Part shown: piece by piece, positions 1,360 through 35,432 of the stretch
Position numbering within the stretch: the first letter of the stretch is position 1
Layout of the letters: each line of letters begins with the position of its first letter
DNA from: Octopus bimaculoides
Taxonomy: Eukaryota
DNA length: 36,181 nucleotides
Direction of reading: 5' to 3'
Assembly: GCF_001194135.2 (NCBI RefSeq)
Contig: NC_068989.1
Coordinates: 30,113,708-30,149,888, forward strand
Translations under genes and position numbers: made by a program
Notes under the pieces: model-generated
Databases searched by the model: none
Told to the model about the DNA's origin: nothing
The model's input: only the letters and a program-made list of their open reading frames with translations

Positions 1360-1596
1360 NNNNNNNNNNNNNNNNNNNNNNNNNNNNNNNNNNNNNNNNN
1401 NNNNNNNNNNNNNNNNNNNNNNNNNNNNNNNNNNNNNNNNNNNNNNNNNNNNNNNNNNNNNNNNNNNNNNNNNNNNNNNNNNNNNNNNNNNNNNNNNNNN
1501 NNNNNNNNNNNNNNNNNNNNNNNNNNNNNNNNNNNNNNNNNNNNNNNNNNNNNNNNNNNNNNNNNNNNNNNNNNNNNNNNNNNNNNNNNNNNNNNN

Positions 1597-1634
<38 letters not shown>
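1306..1634. repeat. (AT)n microsatellite spanning an N gap
   Basis: Direct reading; N at 1360-1596. Confidence 0.95.
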
Positions 1635-1643
<9 letters not shown>

Positions 1644-1815
1644 AACATACATACATAAACACATATAGCTTTTTTTTATACAGGGGTTTATCACATGCCT
1701 TTGTACATACATATATATATATTTATGTATATATACACACAAAATTATCTAAATCCATACATATTTCTGAGAGTGGCTTTTATCCTTCAAACTCTGTACA
1801 CAATTTCTTATGTAC

Positions 1816-2103
1816 TGTCATGTGTGGGAAAATGAAAAGAGGTTCACCTACCTTCTTCTCGTTGACTCCTGTTTAGCAGTAATCTCTCCAATGGTTCTGC
1901 CCTACCCCTGTCACCCAGCATAAGCAGCTGCTATATAACCAAACCTGGGAGCGAATTCACCAACGTCCATCCATGACACCTCCGACAGGGCAAAAGAGGC
2001 CGATGCTCACCCCTCTGCCCTCACTTCCCCTCTCACGCTTCCTCTTCCACTCAGCTCTTTGACCATTCGCATCATGACCTTCTTCTTCCAGCTCATCTCC
2101 ACA
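1816..2103 (-). repeat. 3' LTR of the Gypsy element
   Basis: Direct repeat of 5713-6000 at a constant offset of 3897; TGT...ACA termini. Confidence 0.96.
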
Positions 2104-2133
2104 TGCCCCGCTGATCTCAAAAATCACCTCACT

Positions 2134-4958
2134 TCACTCCAAGTTGAAATCTACCATCCACCTGGGTGGGTGCCTTGAATGTTGAGATCTTCTTAAGCTG
2201 GGAACCTTTTTCTCTTCCTCTTCTCCACAATCATCATCCAATGAAGCGACAATCCTATGAACATCTAAGATGTGATGTGGCATTCCATTCACAGAAATGT
2301 TGTTCTTGGAATCGACAGCCATCACTATTCCTCTGTTCCACTGAGTTGTGCAGCGACTTGATCCAAACTTCATCTCCCACCTCCATGAAGATGAGCCCTC
2401 TCTCTTCCACAGAGCATTCCAATGGTTTACTCGGATGCTGCCATTAATATTTGAATATCACTCTATGTAGCACGGACTCTTTGGCCTGTCCCGATCGGGG
2501 CAACATGTTGTACCAGAATACTGCTTCCAGCGGCAAAATGTGTCCACTCTCCACCATGGCCTTGATTGTTCGATGATGTCTCACCATGGTCCCATTTCCA
2601 CTTGGCCTGTATGCTGCTCTGAAAAAGCAGTGCACTTTCCACCTGTCAAGCATCTCTTTCAGCACCTCTGAATGAAACGCTGTGCTGTTGTCTATCAGCA
2701 ATTCATTCACAGGGCCCTGCTCTAAGAATACCTCGTTTAGAATATATGCAATCTCGTCTACAGAGCCTGCTTTCAATTCCCTCCAAATGGTCATCTGGCC
2801 CAGCCCACAGTTGACCATTGAGAGATATGTTCCCTGCCAGTAGTGCGTCACATCCACTGCCAGTCATCTCTAGTTGTACTCTACTGAAATATTTCCCTGC
2901 TCATGCACACTTGGAGCAGAATCGATGGATTGACACCTATCACAGTTTCCGACCACCTTTTGGATGCTCCATCTAGTAACATTGAAATCACTCTTCCTGG
3001 AGAGATACAGGGTTCTATTCATGCCCATATGATGCATGACATGCAGTCTCCTTAGTTTGGAGTCATTTAACCGACACACCCCAGCTACCCCTTGCTTTGA
3101 TTGTTCTGGTTCCTCTAACCAGGCCTTTTTCACCCTGGTTAGAATGTCTGCCTTGTTTCTCTCTGAAGGCACAAAAATCACATTCAGCTTCTGGCCAAAC
3201 TTGGCAACTAGCTCTCCTAGAACCCCTAGGTGGCACTTTGCTAACATTTCCACAGCCCCTTTGGCTCGAACTCTCTTCTCATTGGTGATCACCAATCCTA
3301 TCTAGCCAAGCACGGTGGCTTAATCCATCTGGATTTTGATGGAGTGCAGCCCCCATTTCAAGGCCAAATCCACTCCCTTCAGTACTGCATCCAACTCAGT
3401 GACATTGATGTGGTAGTAATCGTCTGCTTTTCGAAGCCAGGCCACGTCCTCCTCTTTGGCATCTTCAATTTCCAACACAACTCCTATCACAATGCTGTTA
3501 GTATCACACCATACGGTCCCATTATCCGATTTGGGCACACACCAGTTCCCTCAGACTGGGTCTTCTGCTCTCGTCCTCTCCAGAATTTCTTGCATCATCA
3601 CCACTGTCACCCCAGTTCTCCCCTTCTGTTCGTCTCTTATGTAACTGCATGCTGTATGCAGCCACCCCATATTAGGGTAGTGACCTACAAATTTCCCGCA
3701 CATCAAGAACAGTTCTCTCCTACTGACATTCATACCCAAATCTGGGAACTCTCCCCTTCCAAAACACCAACATGCCTGTTCTGTCTCTTTGAAGCTTCAG
3801 CCCCAAGGCAGCTCTTCCAGCCATTGGTTCCAGTAGTTTTGAAATCAGCCCAAATTTCTTCAAATGTCTCACAACCTCTGTGGCAGGCACTACAGTCTTG
3901 TCCACAAAAATGTCATCTATATAGGAATTGATGACCCTTCTTATCCTATTCACCTTTCCCAGGATAGATTTGAGTACTGTCGCCATGATCTTTGGCACAG
4001 AATTCAGCCCGAAACCCAGCCTTGTCAGACAATATGTCTGACCCTTGTATCACACCAGTTTGATACTACCACAGTTTGTCACTCACATGGAGCTGCAAAT
4101 ATGTTGACTTCAAGTTGACAATCATTGCTGCCTTAGTTGACTGTCTCCATACATGCAGCATCTCACCACAGACATCAATCGCCTCACCATCTGGGTGGCA
4201 TGATACCTAGCCATTCATTTCCTGAAAGTCCAGCACAGGTCTGACTTTGCCTTTGTTGGCTGCTTCACTGCCATTAGCAGTAGCACTCTGCTCACCACCT
4301 CCTCCTTCCATGGGATAAGGACACCCTCCTTAATCCACCTATCTACCCCTTCTTCAAACTCACTCCTGGCATGTCCTTTCAGGGTATGCTGGTAGCAGCT
4401 CACCCTGTTTTTCAGCCTCTGGGGCTCCTCTTTCCAGCACCACTTTATTGTCCACTGCTGACCATCGAATGCCACCTGAAAATCCTTGTCTTTAGTTGTG
4501 TAGGCAGTGCAGATCCTCACGGAGCTTTGCTCCCTCTCACATTCCTGACTCACAGTGCATGGCACCCCCATGCCACCAAACAAAATCATGTCTAGTCCAA
4601 CACTGACACCTCCAAGGTGGTTGATTGCATCCATTCCCATTACCACATCAATCCCATCTACTATGTGGTCAATCATGATTGTCTGCAGCCTTAGTGTTGT
4701 GTCTTGCACCACTATCTCCATGTTGCCACTACCCTTGTATTCAATTTCACTGCTGTCGACCACCCAAACACCACTCATCCCCTTCCATTTCTTTATCACC
4801 TTCAGGGCCATGAGAGATGTCATGCAGCTCGTATCCATGAGGGCCTTTAATATCTTTCCCCTGACCACGGCCTCAACTACTGGCAGTGGCTGCACAAGCA
4901 CCTTTACTCATTCATGAGGGAAGTTTGAGAGGCAGCAACTTCACTGCGGTCTTTTCCC
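2134..4958 (-). pseudogene. pol: Gypsy pol pseudogene: aspartic protease, RT, RNase H, integrase
   Basis: ALMDTSC (protease DTG-like), LTRLGFGL...YIDDI (RT), WCDT...HINVTELDAVLKG (RNase H), HVMHHMG...CDRC (integrase HHCC), LLIDNSTAF...GNGTMVRHHRTIK (integrase core, catalytic E apparently mutated). Broken across frames. Confidence 0.92.
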
Positions 4959-5668
4959 TAACCACAATTTCGGGCGATATGCCCAGTTTGTTTGCACCAG
5001 TAGCAAACGGGTTTGGGCTCTGCACAGTCCCTAGCCATGTGTGGTCCCTGGCACTTAAAACACCAGCCTGTGAATGGCTGCTGTCGTTCCACGGCAGGTT
5101 TCTTTTTGTCTTTCACCAGCCATCACGCAATGTTGCGGGCTTCTGCAACCACTACCATTACTGCCTTCTGCTTGGTGTTTTGTCTCAACACACGGGCTTA
5201 AACGATGAGCTCACTCGTCACCATTTTTTTGCTGCCAGGCAATTGTTGTAGCTGCACTGACACATTGTCAGGAAAGCCATTCACAAAAGCCAGTCATGCT
5301 GCCTTTTCCAGCCTCTCTCTGATAAAACCAAACAGCATAGCCAGCTTCTGTACATCTGCAGTATATTTGTCAACCTGTTCCTCTGTCCACCTGACCATTT
5401 CCAGCTTAGCAAAAGCAGTGTACTCTCCCTCTGTGTAAGCCTCTCTCAAGCACTGCTTGATCTTTGCTACACTCAATTGTTCTTCATTCATTTTGGGGTA
5501 GAGTGCTAGTGCATTCCCCTCCAAATACAGCACTATGAGGTTTGCTACATCGTCGATGCTATGTAGCCTGACCACAACTTCGACCTTTCATATCCAAATT
5601 ACTATGTCTCCTTTGCCATAGAAAGGTCTGATGACATCATTGCCGATCCTTATCTTCACTGCCATCAT
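4904..5668 (-). pseudogene. gag: Gypsy gag pseudogene (255 codons, internal stops) with two zinc knuckles
   Basis: One frame from ATG 5668 (MMAVKIRIGNDVIRPFYGKGDIVIWI*KVEVVVRLHSIDD...) to TAA 4904-4906, with CFKCQGPHMARDC and CYWCKQTGHIARNC at 5062-4964. Confidence 0.88.
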
Positions 5669-5700
5669 GTAGTAGGGGACAACAACATCTGTATATGACT

Positions 5701-5712
5701 GCCGAAATAGCT
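5701..5712 (-). promoter_or_regulatory. Putative primer-binding site AGCTATTTCGGC, complementary to tRNA-Phe(GAA) nt 1-12
   Basis: Plus strand reads GCCGAAATAGCT immediately abutting the 5' LTR. This equals the 5' end of metazoan cytosolic tRNA-Phe as I recall it (GCCGAAATAGCTCAGTTGGGAGAG...). There is no TGG-type PBS at this position. Confidence 0.75.
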
Positions 5713-6000
5713 TGTCGTGCATGGGAAAATAAAAAGAGGTTCACCTACCTTCCTCTTGTCGATGCCTGTCTAGCAGTAATCTCTCCGATGGTCCTGCCCT
5801 ACTCCTGTCACCCAGTATAAGCAGCTGCTATATAACCAAAGCTGAGAGTGAATTCACTAACGTCTGTTCACAACACCTCTGACGGGGCAAAAAAGGCTGA
5901 TGCTTGCCCCTCTGCCCCCACTTCCCCTCTTGCGCTTCCTCTTCCGGTCAGCCCCTTGACCATTCACGTCATGACCCTCTTCTTCCAGCTCATCCCCACA
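5713..6000 (-). repeat. 5' LTR of the Gypsy element
   Basis: TGT...ACA, 288 bp; manual ungapped alignment to 1816-2103 gives 40 mismatches (about 86% identity). Confidence 0.96.
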
Positions 6001-6182
6001 TGTACTTTAAAATTTATTAAGGCTTTCCCAAATAAAATTTTAGAAGCTTTGAGGAAATTAAAAGGTGGTACACAAACACACTCAGTTATGGGTGCACTAT
6101 ATCTGTAAGCTAATAAAATTCACTACATAATTTCCAGTTCACTTGTTATTTATTAATCTCATGTGTGTGAGTGTGTGTGTGT

Positions 6183-7560
6183 ATCATCATCATCATCATC
6201 ATCATTATCTTTTAATGTCCATTGTCCATACTGGCATGGGCTGGATGGTTTGACCAGGGCTGGTAAGCTGAAGGGCTGCACCAGACTCCAGTCTGATTTG
6301 GCATGGTTCCTATGGCTGGATGTCCTTCCTAACACCAACCACTCCAAGAGTGTAGTAGAAGCTTCTATGTGCCACCAGCACGAGTGCCAGTTGTGTGACA
6401 CCAGTATCTGTCATGACGACAACTTCACTTGGCTTTATGGGTCTTCTTCTCAAGCAAGGCATATTGTCAAGGGTCTTGGTCATTTGTCAATGTCTCCATG
6501 AAGCTCAATGCTCAAAATGTGCTTTTTACATGCCAGTTACGCAACATTGGTATTGACCACATTGCCTCCGTGAGGCCCCACACTCGCCAGGTGCTTTTTA
6601 TGTGCCAGTTACTTCTGTGAGGCCCAATGCTCGAAAGGTACATAACTGGTGCCAGTTATGCAACACTGGCATCAGCCACACTGCCTCCGTGAGGCCCAAC
6701 ACATGATAGGTACTTTTTACAAGACACTAGCATCAGGTACTCTGCCTCCGTGAGGCCCAATGCTTGAAAGGTGCGCTTTACATGCCAGTAACATGACACT
6801 GGCATTGGCCACGACAATGGTTTCACTTAGCTTGACAGGTCTTCTCAAATATAGCATATTGCCAAAGATCTTGGTCACTAGTCATTGCTTCTGTGAGGCC
6901 CAACATTCGAAGATCATGCTTCACCACCTTGTCCTATGTCTTCCTGGGTCTCCCTCTTCCACAGGTTCTTCCCACAGCTAGAGATCAGCACTTCTTTACA
7001 CAGCTGTCCTCGTCCATATGCATCACATGACCATATCAGCACAGTCGCCTCTCTTGCACACCACATCTGATGCCTCTTATGTCTAACTTTTCTCTCAAGA
7101 TGTTTGCACTCTGTTGTACATGTACACTGACATTGCATATCTAATGAAGCATGCTAGCTTCATTTCTTTCAAGACTACACATGTTCTTGCTGGTCACAGC
7201 CCCTGTATCACTGCTGTGTAGCACAGCTGTTCATATACAGGCATCATACAATCTGCTTTTCACTCTGAGGGAGGGCCCTTTCTTGCCAACAGAGGTAAGA
7301 GCTCTCTGAACTTTCCCAGCCTATTCTTATTCTTGCATCTATGCTCTTGGAGCATCCACCTCCGCTACTGACTTGGTCACCTAGATAATGGAAGCTATCA
7401 AATACCTCTAGTTTATCCCACTGGCATTTGATAGAGTCTATTTTCTGTACATTTTTAGTGTTTATTGTACCTGTGCAACTTCCACACAGAAAACCTATTT
7501 TCCTAGTTAACCTTGCTGCTGGCAAATTTTTCTGCAATAACATGGATGTTTTATCCTGTT
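6183..7560 (-). mobile_element. 5'-truncated RTE-like LINE (RT C-terminus, 3' UTR with internal repeats, (GAT)n tail)
   Basis: LEVFDSFHYLGDQVSSGGGCSKSIDARIRIGW in ORF 7244-7543(-); the 3' UTR ends in an ATG/GAT repeat at 6183-6205. Homologous to 16704-17640. Confidence 0.85.
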
Positions 7561-8784: not shown

Positions 8785-9245
8785 GTCTATCTCCTTCCAG
8801 GTTGCTTCCTGAAGAGGCTGTACCTAATGTAAAGTCTTCTTGCCTCTGCCATGGTAACCAAACATACTCATCTTTCATTTCTCACTTCTGATCCAAACTT
8901 CCCAACATATTTCTCTCTCTGTTGTCTTTTTTCAACCTTTGTGTTGAAATCTCTCATCACTACAACATAAATGGATTTGTGAGCTGGCACTTCCTCAAGT
9001 TTTTAGTACAGCTCTTCCATTTCAATCGTCTTTGCTAGTATTTTTGGGAGCATAGGTCAGAATGATCTTTAGGGTGGCATTTCCTGAGAGATAAACATCT
9101 AGCACTTCAATCTGTGAAGAAGACAATTGGCAGGAAATGATTTTCGAAGCATATTCTTTGTTTATGATGAATCCTATACTGTTTGTTGCTCTTGCACTTT
9201 TTGCTTTTTCCAGTCTCACAACACTTCCATCTGACCATCTCACAT
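8785..9245 (-). mobile_element. LINE apurinic-type endonuclease fragment
   Basis: IGFIINKEY...LKIILTYAP, then across stops VVVMRDFNTKV...VGKFGSEVRNER, resembling APE domain motifs (GVG....K, YAP, GDFN, G.RN.RG). Confidence 0.75.
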
Positions 9246-9994: not shown

Positions 9995-10727
9995 ATGTAT
10001 GAATTTGGTTACCCTCAAAATAATTTGACAGAGCTTCAAAATAATCACCCCAGAGTTTCAAAATAAAAAAAGCATCCAGTCCATGATGACATGTGTTTGG
10101 TGTTAGAAGGGCATCCAACCATAGAAACCATGCAAAAACAGACATCAGAGCACTATGTAATCCTTGAACACATTGGATCCAGTCAAACCATCCAACTCAT
10201 GCCAGCATGGAGCATGAATGTTAAATGATGATGATGATGATGATGAGCACTGTTACATCAAAATTTGATTTTCTTGTATGCAAGTGAGATGCGCACAGTA
10301 AAAAACATAAAAAAACGAGATAGTAATTTTGAAATTTTTTCATAAAATCTAATTTCCTATGTTAAAAACAGAATTCAGAAAAAAAAATTCAAAAATGAAA
10401 AAGCTACAGCAGAAAAATGAAAAATTGAAATTTTGAAAGTATTCTTTTCCAGAATCATTATCTCAATGTTTAAAATATGTAAATCAGAAAAAAATCTTGA
10501 GACATGGGCAAAAATGAAAATGGTTGTGCACTCTAAAATGGAAGAGCAGTGATAAAAAACCCCCTGAAATTTCAAAAGACAATTTTTGCAGACCTCACTC
10601 CAATGTTTAAAGCATGGAAATCTGAAATAGTTGTCCTCTTTCCCCAAAAAATTTTTAGGGTGGTGTTAGTTGGTTGATTATTTTGAAACTCTGTCAAATT
10701 ATTTTGGGGATAACCAAATTCATACAT
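9995..10727. mobile_element. MITE / non-autonomous DNA transposon with about 55-bp terminal inverted repeats
   Basis: atgtatgaatttggttaccctcaaaataatttgacagagcttcaaaataatcaccc (9995-10050) is the near reverse complement of ggttgattattttgaaactctgtcaaattattttggggataaccaaattcatacat (about 10672-10727). No clear TSD. Confidence 0.8.
10073..10246 (+). mobile_element. SINE or LINE-tail fragment with RTE-type 3' end, nested in the MITE
   Basis: ggtgttagaagggcatccaaccatagaaacc...caaaccatccaactcatgccagcatgga...(gat)n matches the reverse complement of the RTE 3' ends at 6183-6350 and 16704-16840. Confidence 0.75.
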
Positions 10728-16703: not shown

Positions 16704-17640
16704 ATCATCATCATCATTTACGTCACATCCATTTTCCATGCTGGCAAGGGTTGGATGGTTTGACAGGAGCTGGCCAGCTCCAATTGTCTGTTTGGCATGG
16801 TTTATACAGCTGGATGCCCTTCTTAACACTAACCGCTTTATAGAGTATGCTAAGTGTTTTTACATGCCACCAGCCTGAGTGCATTTATGTAGTACTGGCA
16901 TGCATGCATTTTACATGGCACTGGCACTTCAAGACAAAGACTTCTTAGCTGAGAGTGGGAATGAGGGCATTGCCATAAAAGACATGCCTGTAATTTTATT
17001 TAGCTTGGCATGTCTTCTCAAGTACAGTGAATCACCACAAATGCTGGTCCTTTGTCATCATCTCAGTGAAGCTCAGCATCTGAGATCCTTTCTCACCACT
17101 TCATCCCACATCTTCCTGGGTCTACTCCTTCCACAGGCTCCCTCTATAATTAGAAATTGGCACTTTTTAAAGCAGCTGTCCTCATCTATATGCATTACAT
17201 GCACACAACATCTGATGCCTCTTATACTTAGTCTTCCTCTTAAATAATTTACACTCTGTTGTATGTGCACACTGATATTACTCATGCTGGCTTCATCTCT
17301 TTCAAGCCTTTGCAAATCCTCTGTAGTCATAGCCATACATAGGCAGGTGTCATACAATCTGCCTTTCACTCTGAGGGAGAGGCTCTTAGTTACCAACAAT
17401 GGTAGGAACTCTCTGAACTTTGCCCAGCCAGTACTTATTCTAGCAACTATGCTTTCAGAACATCGTCATCCACTGCTAACTTAGGCACCTATGTAACAAA
17501 AACTGTCTACTACTTCTAAGGACCCCATCCCAGCCCCAAGCATTTGAGGAAGTCTATGCTCTGGGTATTTTTTAGTGCTTATTGTACCTGCACATTTTCA
17601 CATGCAAAGACTATTTCCTGTGATACCACTACATCTCTTA
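16704..17640 (-). mobile_element. Second 5'-truncated RTE-like LINE copy
   Basis: ORF 17073-17399(-) LVTKSLSLRVKGRLYDTC...EDLQRLERDEASM...GRSRPRKMWDEVV; colinear with 6183-7560; (GAT)n tail at about 16704-16717. Confidence 0.85.
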
Positions 17641-24281: not shown

Positions 24282-24470
24282 AGTACTGGTGCCATGAAAA
24301 AAAAAAGCAGTACACTCTGTAAAGTGGTTGATATTAGGAAGGTTACCCAGCCATACAAACCATGCCAAAGCTGAGACATTGGAGCAAGATGTGATCCTCC
24401 AGCCCACTGGATCCTGTCAAACTGTCCAATGCACACCAGCATGGATGATGGACATGAAATGATGATGATG
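24282..24470 (+). mobile_element. SINE or LINE-tail fragment with RTE-type 3' end
   Basis: gtacactctgtaaagtggttgatattaggaagg...ctgtcaaactgtccaatgcacaccagcatgga...(gat)n. Confidence 0.7.
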
Positions 24471-29094: not shown

Positions 29095-29616
29095 AATTTT
29101 CTCATAACATATAGCGAAATGGATGTCTTTTAAGGCAATTTTTTTTTGTGGCTTATTTTAATACAATATTTATGTGTACATTTTCATAAATGTTTGTCTG
29201 AGTAGATTTCTACGCATGCGTGAAACATCAGACGAAAGTGAAACATTAGAAGCAAATTGAAATACTGTCCGAAAATGACCTCAAAATTGTGGAACTCAAC
29301 GTAGTTACCGAAGTTTTTTTAGTTGTGAAAAAGAGTTGTTGAGTGAAAAACATAGTTTATTTGGTAGATAGATAATAAACAGCAGCAGCCATGTTTTGTT
29401 ATAACTCTCAAAGTTGTCAACGAACTGTCATCTGATCAGCTGTTTTGTTCGCTAATTTTTTTTAAAGTGAAAGAGAGGAGAAAGTGAAAAATGTATGAAT
29501 TTGTATATGAAATAGATGTGTGTGTGTGNNNNNNNNNNNNNNNNNNNNNNNNNNNNNNNNNNNNNNNNNNNNNNNNNNNNNNNNNNNNNNNNNNNNNNNN
29601 NNNNNNNNNNNNNNNN

Positions 29617-29790: not shown

Positions 29791-31524
29791 TTTTCTCTCT
29801 CCCTTCCTCTCTCTCCCTTCCTCTCTCCCTTCCCCTCTCTCCCTTCCTCTCTCTCTCTCTTTCTCCCCCCCTCTCTCTCTCTCACACACACACATCCATT
29901 TTATATACACATACATACATCTTACATTTTCTCTTCTCTTTCACTTTTAAACAAAAGTAAATGAATAAAAATTTTTTTACAGAAATTAACGAACACACAT
30001 GACAGTTCTGAAAGTCAAAACGAAAGATCACCTAAGCAACTTTCAGATGGATGGGACTAATTCGGAGAAACATTACTTTCATTATTCACACATTGTCAGT
30101 CTTGTAATCGAACACTGCAATTTTGGTTCAGCTTGAAAATGTGAAACTATTTTCACTTTCTAATGAAACCTGGTCATTGTAACTATCAATATCAGTGTGT
30201 TTCACTGTTGGGTGAAGGGCAAAGTCACAAACATGTACTAAGACTCACAGACATACATTAATACACACTTCAAGCCTATCTCTGTTCCTGTGTGTGTCTG
30301 TCTGTGTCTTTAGGTGTGTGTGTTTGTGTGTGTGTGTCAGTCGTCACAAAAATGTATGTATACTGACAGGTACAAACACCGTCACACACATATACTTGTC
30401 AGTGATTGGCCTAATGTATGTAACGAATGCACGAACACATTCATATAGAAAATGTGACGTCATTGTCGTTGTGGTGTTGGTAAAAGATGTTGTTTACGAT
30501 AGGTGATTAAAAGAAAAATGATAATGTTAAATTTTTGTAATGCAAATATGTGAATGAAAATATAGTTTAGTTGGTAGCCAAAAGCTTACTGAATCTTTTG
30601 ATACCCCATACGTCAAAATCGGCAACTCGGTTTGGAATGCATAAGGAACATATGCACACACACATACACACATACAAACTCTCTTTTATATATATATATA
30701 TATATATAGATAGACCTGTATGGGTGTGCATTTGCTTTTCATGCAAAAATAGCTGTGTGAATTGCTTCCATATTTGGGATATATAATAGGGTCTTCAATT
30801 TATTTTTATTATTAAAAATAAACAATATTGCTTTACATATATGATTCACTTCTTTAAAAAGGTTTCTCAATGTCAACTTCTGGTATTGATGGCGAAATTT
30901 TCTGTTTTCATTTGTAAGATCTCTCACTCTCTATTTTAATGTTTTCATTTCAAGTTTTAATTTGCTATTTGCAAACAAGTATGATAAATTACTGAAAGAA
31001 ATATTTAAGTTCACAAATTTAAATATTCAGTACAGGATTGTTTTTAATGAGCTTTTATTTATACGATTTTTTCATTTCATTCATTGTTTGCAAAGTTCTC
31101 TCTACCCCACTCTCTGTCTTTCTCTCTCTCTCCCTGACACACACACTATCTCTCTAATCACACTAGATCTGTAATATAAATACAGACATACACACATACT
31201 CTTGGGTTGATTTCATTATTACACAAATGTCACATTAGAATTTTGCAATTCAACATGGTGAGTGCAGAAAACTATGGGTATTTTTCGCTTGAACCTGCCC
31301 ATTTTGTTAATTTCCATAAATTTTTTTTATCTATCTACTTTTTGCATGCTGTGTTCAGCTCTATGTATTTGTAGTCAATCACACACTCCCACATGTGTTT
31401 TTGTATGTGCATTTTTATACATTTATGTATGTGTGTATGAGAGAGAGAGAAAGAGAGTGGGTCAGTCAAGGAGTGTGTTGTCATGTATATGTACATACAT
31501 AAATACATATACATACATCTTTGT

Positions 31525-32619: not shown

Positions 32620-35240
32620 CAGGTAGCAAGATTCAATGTTGAATTCTGCAACTCTGTTAACTCTATTAAGTATGTTTGCAAATATATAAACTTAGATGCT
32701 GCAATATAAACTCTTATGCAGAATGGCAGTCAGCAGATAAATAAAAATGACAAAGGTGCACAGTATGACAGAAGATACATCAGTACCAATGAGGTTTTTG
32801 GCGCATCTTCAATTTTCCCATTCATAAGCGGCACCCAGCCATCATTCATCTGAGTGTCCATCTGGAGAATGGCCACAAGGTTATCTTTACAAAACAAACA
32901 GCCTTGCAGCAAGCACTTTGTCTGAAAGAAACTACCATTATTGCCTTTTTAAAGTTGTGTCAAATAGATGAAGGTGCAAGAAAACTCCATTACCCACAAT
33001 TACCCAAGTATTACATGTGGAGGAACAATAAATGATGCAAGAGGAAACGTGGGGCTGACACTCTTGCAAGAATTTACAGTGTCCCCCACAAGTCTAGCAG
33101 AATGCTAACACTTATAGCTCCTTTTGCATGAAATACGTGGTCTCAAATCATTCCAAGATTTGAGGTGGGTAAATGGTCACGTGTGTGAAACTTATAGGGA
33201 AGCATGCTATCAACAAGGTTTATTAGTAAATGATGAGCATTAGGACCTTGCATTGACTGAAGCATCAGTATCAGATTCGCTAAGGAAACTCTGTAACCTT
33301 TTGCAATTATATTAAACATGTGTCAACTTGGCAGTCCCCTACAGGTTTAGATGAAGCATGACTGAGGGCTTAAAGTATGCAGTTCAACAGGCAAACCCAG
33401 ATATCAATATTCAATTCTCTGAAACAATTTTTAACCAAGCATTGATTGAAAATGAGGATCAAGTTTTGGCCATGGGAGGCAAAAATTTGAAAGAGTCTGG
33501 CTCTGGACTGCCAAAAATAAACCATTAAATTAGTGATTTAACTTCAAGAGACATAGCAAGGGAGACAAATTATGACATCACAGAGCTGGCTGCATTTGTG
33601 AATGAACATGAACCTAAACTTCTTCCAGAACAACACTGCATATGATAAAATTATTTCGTCAGTCAGAGGAAAAAGGAGAGGAATTTTCTTTCTTAATGCT
33701 CCTGGTGGCACAGGTAAAGCTAAGGCAACAAAAAAGAATTGCAGTTGCTGTAGCATCATGTGGCATTGCTGCTACCCTTCTCACAGGAGGACGAACAGCT
33801 CATTCTGCTTTAAATTACTGCTAAACCTGGTCACAAATGATAGTTCAATTTGTAACATTAGCAAAGGTTCAGGTTCAGCATGTCACATACAAGTGCAATG
33901 GAAGCTCTTGATAAGACCTTAGAGGACATCAGAGGCAAAAATAAATCTATGGGAGGAGTTACATTAGTTTTATCAAGAGACTTCAGACAGACATCATCAG
34001 TCATCCCGAGACAAAAAAATCTGATGAAATAAAAGCATGCATTAAGTCTTCACACCCATGGAATAAAGTACAGAAATTCTCCTTCAATACTAACATGTGA
34101 GCTTTATTACATGGGAACCAGTATGCAAAACAGTTTTCAACATAGCTCCTGCAATTAAGAAACGGGGAAAGTACCATTTGATGGGAATGGTGATATAGAT
34201 TTGGCTCATATTGCTATCATGGTGAATTCCCCAGCTGAATTGAATAACAGGGTATTTCTAGACTTAAGTAATGATTATAATTCACATAAATGGTTGCATG
34301 AAAGGGCGTTTCNNNNNNNNNNNNNNNNNNNNNNNNNNNNNNNNNNNNNNNNNNNNNNNNNNNNNNNNNNNNNNNNNNNNNNNNNNNNNNNNNNNNNNNN
34401 NNNNNNNNNNNNNNNNNNNNNNNNNNNNNNNNNNNNNNNNNNNNNNNNNNNNNNNNNNNNNNNNNNNNNNNNNNNNNNNNNNNNNNNNNNNNNNNNNNNN
34501 NNNNNNNNNNNNNNNNNNNNNNNNNNNNNNNNNNNNNNNNNNNNNNNNNNNNNNNNNNNNNNNNNNNNNNNNNNNNNNNNNNNNNNNNNNNNNNNNNNNN
34601 NNNNNNNNNNNNNNNNNNNNNNNNNNNNNNNNNNNNNNNNNNNNNNNNNNNNNNNNNNNNNNNNNNNCACATAATGTGACAGAAGCTACCATCATCACTG
34701 GATGTGCCACTGGGGAAAAGGATTTCATTCCAAGAATTTCAATCAAACTAACAGACATGTGATTTGAGTTCAAATGAACACAATTCCCAGTGTGACTTTG
34801 CTTTGCAATGTCTATTAATAAAACTAAAGGTCAGACTTTGAAATCTACTTGCTTGCATTTAACTGAGTCTTGCTTTTCATATGGTCAACTTTAAGTTGGT
34901 TGCTCCAGGGTTGGTAGTTTGCAAGACCTGTTTGTCTATGCTCCAAACCAGAAAACAAAGAATGTTGTTTACCCAAAAACTCTTATGTAATTTCCTTCAA
35001 CATATATGATAGAATTTATCTCCCTTCATAAAAGTAGTAAATTTTGTATTTTCATTTATTATTATTATTATTTGTATTATGAATTCAGAGTTCATTTCCC
35101 AACTGAAAAATAAATTGTATCCTGATTGAAAAATAAGATGAATTTAGAATAACAAATTTCTATACAACATATTTTGCTTTTTTTTTCCCAATATATAAAG
35201 AACAATTTCATTCATGAGCAATGCCAGATGCCTCTGCTAG
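32620..35240 (+). mobile_element. Decayed Helitron (Rep C-terminal part, PIF1-like helicase, 3' CTAG terminus)
   Basis: FNVEFCNSVNSIKYVCKYIN (Rep YxxKY motif), RYISTNE...HPAIIHLSVHLENG, LNAPGGTGK (Walker A), GIAATLLTGGRTAHS, GGVTLVLSRDFRQ, FAMSINKTKGQTL, VYPKTLM* at 34990. Candidate 3' end ...tctgCTAG/T at 35237-35241. 5' end not identified; spans an N gap. Confidence 0.93.
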
Positions 35241-35321: not shown

Positions 35322-35432
35322 NNNNNNNNNNNNNNNNNNNNNNNNNNNNNNNNNNNNNNNNNNNNNNNNNNNNNNNNNNNNNNNNNNNNNNNNNNNNNNN
35401 NNNNNNNNNNNNNNNNNNNNNNNNNNNNNNNN

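Follow-up and report, generated by a model that had tools for sequence, protein, structure and literature searches.

How does an LTR retrotransposon begin reverse transcription if the sequence next to its 5' LTR pairs with the 5' end of a tRNA? In canonical priming by retroviruses and Ty3/gypsy elements, 8–18 nt of the tRNA 3' end, including the CCA, anneal to a primer-binding site (PBS) that begins with TGG. The window considered here, the whole stretch of 36,181 nucleotides that was analysed, raises this question because the first 12 nt after the 5' LTR of its only LTR retrotransposon complement the start of tRNA-Phe. The sections below describe the element, the relatives that share the layout, and the reading of the site to which they point.

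The Element in the Window

A single LTR retrotransposon lies in the window, on the minus strand at 1816–6000 (Table 1). It is degenerate, and no second copy was detected with tblastn. The initial marker of the element was a direct-repeat pair at 1816–2105 and 5713–6002, and the limits of the LTRs were set by aligning both ends with their flanks and reading the sequence, independently of the 12-mer. The features by which LTR retrotransposons are recognized are all present: LTR ends of the TG..CA type with a short target-site duplication (TSD), a gag with CCHC knuckles, the domain order protease, reverse transcriptase (RT), RNase H, and integrase (PR-RT-RH-IN), and a polypurine tract (PPT).

This copy of the element is old and dead, with LTRs that are 14% diverged and many stops. 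In the gag remnant there are in-frame stops near 5296 and 5200 and a frameshift near 5122. The pol remnant has frameshifts near 4215, 4050, 3750, and 2440 and stops near 4209, 4068, 3551, 3320, 3302, 2870, 2864, and 2444.

Table 1. Parts of the LTR retrotransposon in the window, in element order
Feature	Position	Strand	Remarks
TSD GTACA, upstream copy (element sense)	6001..6005	-	identical 5-mer flanking both LTRs
5' LTR, 288 bp, TGTGG...GACA, TATATAG near middle	5713..6000	-	~86% identity to 1816–2103
Candidate primer-binding site AGCTATTTCGGC, flush with LTR	5701..5712	-	complement of tRNA-Phe(GAA) nt 1–12; AGCTAT-NNN-GGC in relatives
gag remnant, ATG at 5668, conserved N-terminus (..IRPFYGKGD..)	4958..5668	-	two CCHC knuckles at 4958–5116 (zf-CCHC, E=8.5e-9)
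pol remnant: protease, RT, DUF7047, RNase H, integrase	2134..4907	-	tblastn to intact relative P0043 covers residues 3–935
RT motif YIDD	~3925	-	
DUF7047	~3554–3739	-	
RNase H	3323–3550	-	
Integrase	2447–3301	-	
PPT region GAGATCAGCGGGGCA, purine-rich, adjoins 3' LTR	2104..2118	-	relatives have ATCA(A/G)GGGGG here
3' LTR, 288 bp	1816..2103	-	paired with 5713–6000
TSD GTACA, downstream copy	1811..1815	-	same 5-mer as 6001–6005

The GC content of the window is 36.7%. Runs of N that mark assembly gaps (1360–1596, 29529–29616, 34313–34667, and 35322–35432) lie within microsatellite-rich DNA; (TA)n/(TATG)n arrays are found beside the 3' end of the element and (CT)n(CA)n arrays around 29.5–32.4 kb. 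Two dispersed repeat pairs (10140–10236 with 24374–24470, and 7055–7134 with 17200–17279) share 76–78% identity over 80–97 bp. Neither pair is related to the LTR element, and both are probably pieces of other interspersed repeats.

A 12-mer Complementary to the 5' End of tRNA-Phe

A first-pass annotation, made from the letters alone, had described the 12-mer as abutting the LTR without a spacer and had noted the lack of a TGG-type PBS. Both observations stand. The LTR edge is fixed by the TSD GTACA and by reading of the sequence, and the 12-mer (GCCGAAATAGCT on the plus strand; AGCTATTTCGGC in element sense, read from 5712 to 5701) comes right after the last base of the 5' LTR at 5713. The window element has no TGG-type site after its 5' LTR, and its gag ATG is 32 nt beyond the 12-mer.

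The 12-mer is the exact complement, at 12 of 12 positions, of nt 1–12 of human and Drosophila tRNA-Phe(GAA). The tRNA sequence given in the annotation agrees with published sources: human tRNA-Phe(GAA) begins with GCCGAAATAGCTCAGTTGGGAGAGCG (PMC11706605), and a Northern probe for the 5' end of Drosophila tRNA-Phe matches the reverse complement of these 25 nt exactly (PMC7038984). Since a deuterostome and an ecdysozoan have this 5' end in common, it is likely to be the molluscan state too, and by such bracketing the tRNA-Phe of the window host would begin in the same way. The match starts at tRNA nt 1 and stops at the LTR edge, just as had been claimed; pairing runs through nt 12, and for it to extend to nt 13, a C, the A of the LTR would have to be a G. 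The perfect 12-bp duplex is calculated at about -19 to -23 kcal/mol. By chance alone, a given site would match the 5' terminus of some member of ~50 tRNA families flush and at 12/12 positions with a probability of the order of 1e-5 to 1e-6. ARAGORN found no tRNA gene in the window, and an Rfam search of the window gave no matches.

Relatives Carrying the Same Layout

A homologue search with the stitched Pol translation returned 585 homologues, mostly on ~4 kb contigs from ENA, Logan, and JGI. Homologues among annotated proteins come from Argonauta hians, Petrolisthes manimaculis, and Oratosquilla oratoria. Genomic loci were examined for these named hosts and for one long ENA contig, and a scan of metagenome contigs with the Pol alignment added 72 loci. 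The assemblies with intact copies are GCA_054771915.1 for Argonauta hians, GCA_034508575.1 for Petrolisthes manimaculis, and GCA_046742065.1 for Oratosquilla oratoria, and locus L003 derives from a contig of 187 kb. No relatives were found in a viral contig collection.

Among the loci with a readable LTR/gag junction, AGCTAT-NNN-GGC directly follows the LTR in 36 exact cases, including the window. The set comprises two loci from Argonauta hians (L001 and L078), one from Petrolisthes (L002), two from Oratosquilla (L076 and L077), and ~30 metagenome contigs, and the LTR ends with ACA in nearly all junctions. Near variants are found in L026 (position 234), which has AGCTATTTCGTC with one mismatch, and in L042 (upstream of 874), which has AGCTATCACGCG with GCG for GGC and an ATG immediately after. 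One further junction, at the end of contig L012, is ambiguous; it reads ACA followed by AGCTATTCTTTC and is possibly either an additional class of site beyond the five described below or a false junction.

Pol identity among the relatives is only 40–60%. The flush 12-mer is therefore kept across a large, old family, as the first-pass annotation had suggested should be checked, and the search that it proposed for sister copies with a normal TGG-type PBS found none in the window element or in the 36-case junction set. In an alignment anchored at the junction, the 22 nt upstream of ACA, position 13, and the positions beyond have an information content near zero. This absence of conservation past the 12-mer, position 13 included, means that complementarity ends at nt 1 of the partner, as would be expected for the 5' end of an RNA. 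In many elements the gag ATG comes 1–5 nt past the 12-mer (the overall range is 1–40 nt), which leaves no room for another primer site.

The age of the window copy could invite the view that the likeness to tRNA-Phe is a chance resemblance in a decayed element. This view is refuted by the family-wide conservation of the 12-mer and is barely credible. Against it stand the exact, flush match at all 12 positions, the presence of the same motif in the 36-case set with flanks that are otherwise unalignable, and the lack of any further occurrence of the exact pattern across ~330 kb of related loci.

Several elements that carry the site have moved recently. In three complete elements (L001, L002, and L003) of 4.0–4.4 kb, the two LTRs are 100% identical, the TSDs are 5 bp long, and the pol ORFs are intact; the two Oratosquilla elements share ~97% Pol identity while residing on different chromosomes. 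These attributes indicate recent transposition.

Two side observations concern the surroundings of individual relatives. In L021, two site/internal units (positions 55 and 4116) occur in tandem as LTR-internal-LTR-internal, which represents either an array sharing an LTR or the assembly of circular or concatemeric forms. In L076, a tRNA-Val(CAC) gene (1595–1667, minus strand) lies ~200 bp upstream of the Oratosquilla 5' LTR, and none is found near the sister copy L077; this proximity could be chance or a hint of targeting to Pol III genes.

Five Site Classes and Their Linkage to the Host

Within the 12-mer, the three bases facing tRNA nt 4–6 are the only ones that vary, and they fall into five discrete classes. 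Class TTC, with the complement GCCGAAAUAGCU of metazoan tRNA-Phe, is found in the window, in both Argonauta lineages, and in 12 metagenome contigs. Classes CGC (complement GCCGCGAUAGCU), CAC (GCCGUGAUAGCU), and CCC (GCCGGGAUAGCU) come from metagenome contigs, and class CTA (GCCUAGAUAGCU) is found in the crab and mantis shrimp and in no other element. The invariant parts of the site correspond to tRNA G1–C3 and A7–U12, the latter consisting of A7, U8, and A9 together with the three bases that open the D-stem. These bases are conserved across a wide range of tRNAs, and they partly coincide with the beginning of the Pol III A box.

On a neighbour-joining tree of Pol, the classes are intermixed. 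The CTA elements of crab and mantis shrimp are sisters in 0 of 200 bootstraps; 69% of the replicates place the crab element with a CCC element, and the mantis-shrimp elements are nearest to the TTC elements of Argonauta. Class TTC is found in each of the three cephalopod-type lineages and in three lineages of a single WGS project (CAJIBL01). In the sample series Ga01877xx, two lineages with only 46% identity to each other both carry CCC. As judged by these comparisons, the site class tracks the host or sample and not the phylogeny of the elements, as would be predicted for a site that has to pair with an RNA supplied by the host and having a group-specific acceptor stem.

The predicted partner of the TTC class is tRNA-Phe(GAA), by exact identity with the human and Drosophila sequence. 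For the CTA class, a variant of tRNA-Phe is a plausible partner. A 134-kb contig classed as viral (L083, IMG/VR UViG_3300046655_000646) carries a eukaryote-type tRNA-Phe(GAA) at 2377–2402 on the minus strand that starts with GCCTAGATAGCT, and its acceptor stem begins with GCCTAGA, the 5' end implied by the malacostracan CTA class. A scan of a genome contig collection for GCCTAGATAGCTCAGTNGG returned only bacterial tRNAs, mostly tRNA-Phe. Together, the tRNA-Phe of L083 and the mostly Phe-type bacterial tRNAs with this 5' end make such a variant plausible in Malacostraca. Drosophila, a pancrustacean, keeps GCCGAAA, and this counts against a simple tRNA-Phe reading of the CTA class; a lineage-specific change in malacostracan tRNA-Phe or a different tRNA would be needed. 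Scans of IMG/VR for 5' ends of the CGC, CAC, and CCC types gave only prokaryote-type or phage tRNAs, for Phe and Thr. ARAGORN searches for host tRNAs in the window and ~40 loci found only the tRNA-Val in L076.

Self-Priming and Additional tRNA Contacts

With self-priming of the Tf1/sushi type, the site would pair with the 5' bases of the element's own transcript, RNase H would free the primer, and the likeness to tRNA-Phe would be incidental. The length of the duplex, 12 nt, resembles the 11 nt of Tf1, and the LTRs of L001 contain GCCGTGATAGCA (2834–2845 and 6890–6901), which could pair imperfectly with the site of the same element at -15.2 kcal/mol. The first-pass annotation had set self-priming aside after seeing no complement of the 12-mer in the LTR, and scans of the window and of the relatives bear this out. 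The 12-mer is unique in the window, and its sole match at two or fewer mismatches lies at 30743, far outside the element, so the LTR of the window element holds no complement. Among 32 junctions scanned, complete LTRs included, there were 0 complements at two or fewer mismatches; L001 was covered by the duplex and pattern scans. RNA duplex scans of four complete LTRs gave pairing no stronger than that of shuffled sites. Over ~330 kb, the sense pattern GCCNNNATAGC was found in a single element (L001), against ~5 occurrences expected per strand by chance, and no LTR sequence covaries with the five site classes. With complement, duplex, and family-wide pattern scans all negative, Tf1-type self-priming is effectively refuted and can be considered very improbable.

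The GCCGTGATAGCA of L001 is a near-complement of the CAC class, and it agrees with the complement of the TTC site of the same element at 9 of 12 positions. Among ~36 elements no other case resembles a self-primer, and this one is within chance. A separate candidate, additional tRNA-Phe contacts of the bipartite Ty1/Ty3 type, was also rejected, as the TTC-class elements have no recurrent complementary word of at least 9 nt outside nt 1–12.

A Proposed Priming Mechanism

The 12-mer is probably the minus-strand PBS of a ~4.2 kb retrovirus-like LTR family, predicted from its sequence to pair with the 5'-terminal 12 nt of a host tRNA, which would be tRNA-Phe(GAA) for the window element and its cephalopod relatives. 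A different role for the same 12 nt has to be weighed, namely that of a cis element (a packaging or dimerisation signal, a control of translation, or a decoy or binding site for tRNA-Phe) in an element that primes elsewhere or otherwise. The distance of 1–40 nt to the gag start codon would suit such a role, tRNA-like and tRNA-binding elements are known in retroviral 5' leaders such as that of HIV-1, and priming itself is something that we infer. However, the 12-mer occupies the canonical position of a primer site, flush with U5 in every element, with no other candidate site and often no other noncoding base between the LTR and gag. Its sharp 12-nt limits, free 13th base, and discrete host-linked classes are the signature of pairing with the 5' end of a host RNA. 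A purely cis-acting role is thus quite unlikely.

If the 12-mer is a PBS, the steps of priming can be outlined. The nucleocapsid, with its CCHC knuckles, would open the acceptor and D stems so that tRNA nt 1–12 anneal to the site, pairing the 5' strand of the acceptor stem (nt 1–7), U8, A9, and D-stem nt 10–12. The remainder of the tRNA, nt 13–76, would overhang U5, and a cut between nt 12 and 13 would be needed to provide a 3'-OH. Since the duplex ends at nt 12 on the U5 edge, a 3'-OH at nt 12 would be required, whether from a cut tRNA or from a short 5' fragment. By analogy with Tf1, the nuclease would most likely be the cellular-type RNase H of the element itself acting in trans; alternatively, the primer would be a 5' tRNA fragment made beforehand. 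Two points count against these steps: known 5' tRNA fragments are usually at least 14 nt, and we know of no described nuclease that cuts inside the D-stem.

The proposed mechanism would also offer a way to maintain the site. Plus-strand synthesis would copy the 12-nt primer, and the site would be re-templated from the host tRNA with each cycle. Re-templating of this kind would account for the perfection of the site, the restriction of differences to positions opposite nt 4–6, and the host-linked classes. Retroviruses are known to copy their tRNA primer during plus-strand strong-stop synthesis (PMC7472051).

The first-pass annotation had gone as far as proposing that a short 5' fragment of tRNA-Phe primes minus-strand synthesis. 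Its sequence basis holds, with a flush, conserved 12-mer, no TGG-type site, and no self-complement, and from this basis we infer priming and the cut at nt 12. The choice of tRNA-Phe as the partner is supported for the TTC class only. A related explanation needs no cut directed by the element. The site might pair with the 3' end of some other pre-existing small host RNA that ends with ...GCCGNNAUAGCU-3', such as an abortive or processed Pol III product or a fragment of a tRNA-derived SINE transcript. Short 5' tRNA fragments are known in many animals, and UAGCU, at the start of the Pol III A box, is common to several Pol III transcripts. The Argonauta locus L078 even carries a tRNA-like SINE head with GAAATAGCTCAGTTGG, but this head lacks the GCC start. 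No 12-nt RNA species of this kind is known, and the complementarity of the site starts exactly at nt 1 of mature tRNA-Phe, which makes this explanation unlikely.

The tRNA-like head (..TGAAATAGCTCAGTTGGATGAGCATTAGACTGGAGATTCAATCC..) lies at ~9100–9165 on the minus strand of L078, in a RabGAP-TBC intron of Argonauta hians, and probably belongs to a tRNA-derived SINE. It shares nt 4–19 with tRNA-Phe and was not called by ARAGORN.

Returning to the 5' end of tRNA-Phe as the primer, a broader proposal can be made tentatively, with doubt slightly outweighing confidence. A retrovirus-like lineage that is widespread and still active in marine and soil invertebrates, and possibly in protists, would prime from a 12-nt 5' piece of tRNA-Phe cut in trans by a Tf1-like RNase H. 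The site would track the acceptor stem of the host, and the process would constitute a fourth LTR priming mode.

Classification of the Family

The family had been labelled Gypsy in the first-pass annotation, and the label fits in part. The domain order, PR-RT-RH-IN, is that of Ty3/gypsy elements. There is, however, no match to a Ty3-type RNase H; DUF7047 and a cellular-type RNase H are found, and the nearest structures are retroviral-like. Pfam matches in the intact relatives are limited to a weak RVT_1, DUF7047, and RVT_3/RNase_H, with neither RT_RNaseH nor RT_RNaseH_2. In a PDB search, the nearest matches were the integrases of retroviruses (MMTV and lentiviruses) and the PR-RT of foamy virus, not those of Ty3. 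Going by these domain matches and the PDB search, the family would be placed outside Ty3/gypsy (Metaviridae) in the strict sense.

DUF7047 gives the strongest and most constant domain match (P0038, P0043, and P0054, as well as the window). It sits between the RT and the cellular-type RNase H, where retroviruses have their connection or tether domain. In its domains the family can be likened to Odin retrotransposons, lokiretroviruses, and retroviruses, the group with a dual RNase H. The likeness consists of a coding capacity of gag-pol only, a weak RVT_1 match, an extra domain between RT and RNase H, and a retroviral-like integrase. The dual-RNase-H Odin and lokiretrovirus lineages have been described (PMC9040795); Odin is reported only from sea anemones, and its paper is silent on the primer site (PMC9040795).

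Novelty and Significance

Priming of LTR elements is known from three sources, namely a tRNA 3' end, a half-tRNA, and a self-primer (PMC6317226; PMC7175516), and a large plant survey found no category beyond these (PMC6317226). A full-text search of the literature, with many subscription papers outside its coverage, found no description of a PBS complementary to the 5' terminus of a tRNA. An article by Goodwin & Poulter (2001, Yeast 18:865), as cited in another paper (PMC7175516), proposed "novel mechanisms of priming" for Cryptococcus Tcn2-5. The layout of the site would represent a start of reverse transcription that is apparently undescribed.

If the proposal is true, a new mode of priming would exist in a lineage with enzymes that look closest to those of retroviruses. 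It would also give 5' tRNA fragments a second link to retroelements, as primers besides their role as inhibitors. For annotation, pipelines that seek only complements of tRNA 3' ends, of which a search for a 12-nt tRNA 3'-end PBS is an example (PMC13524379), would label the whole family as having no PBS. The 12-mer could additionally serve as a mark of host lineage for elements that move horizontally or vertically. The idea is directly testable with the intact copies in genomes that are already sequenced.

Comparison with Known Priming Modes

The layout shares several attributes with canonical priming, including a host tRNA as the partner, a site immediately 3' of U5, a PPT at the 3' LTR, and a 5-bp TSD. 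It differs in that the site does not begin with TGG and the opposite end of the tRNA is bound, leaving the natural 3'-OH of the tRNA unusable.

Half-tRNA sites are complementary to a region that ends in the anticodon stem-loop of tRNA-iMet or tRNA-Ile, and the primer is a fragment of ~39 nt. The half-tRNA primer of copia is reported to pair with its site at the anticodon-stem end of such a fragment (Kikuchi et al. 1986, Nature 323:824), and half-tRNA priming was reportedly also treated by Ke et al. (1999, RNA 5:929). The family described here resembles the half-tRNA elements (copia, Ty5, and plant Ty1/copia elements of the Osser/Bianca type) in that the proposed primer is a 5'-derived fragment of a host tRNA and not an intact CCA end, so that cleavage would be needed. 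In contrast to those elements, the site complements nt 1–12 only, ending in the D-stem of tRNA-Phe and not in an internal segment that reaches the anticodon stem-loop, and the PR-RT-RH-IN order is not of the copia type. A "1/2 tRNA" category has been used in the plant survey (PMC6317226).

Reverse transcription is self-primed in Tf1, Tf2, and Tj1 (PMC7175516; PMC4600332), and in Tf1 RNase H cuts an 11-bp RNA/RNA primer duplex between nt 11 and 12 (PMC7175516). The family is like these elements in its very short duplex (11 nt in Tf1, 12 nt here), its use of the 5'-terminal bases of an RNA, and a site that directly abuts the LTR. In Tf1 the primer 3'-OH depends on an endonucleolytic cut where the duplex ends, and by analogy such a cut would be needed here. 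The Tf1 primer is taken from the element's own transcript, whereas the predicted primer here is a host RNA matching tRNA-Phe nt 1–12. The Pol is also different, as it does not resemble that of chromoviruses and, among solved structures, has its nearest relatives in retroviruses. If the proposal holds, the family would add a further solution to the priming problem, one that joins the Tf1 trick of cutting a short RNA duplex with the use of a tRNA.
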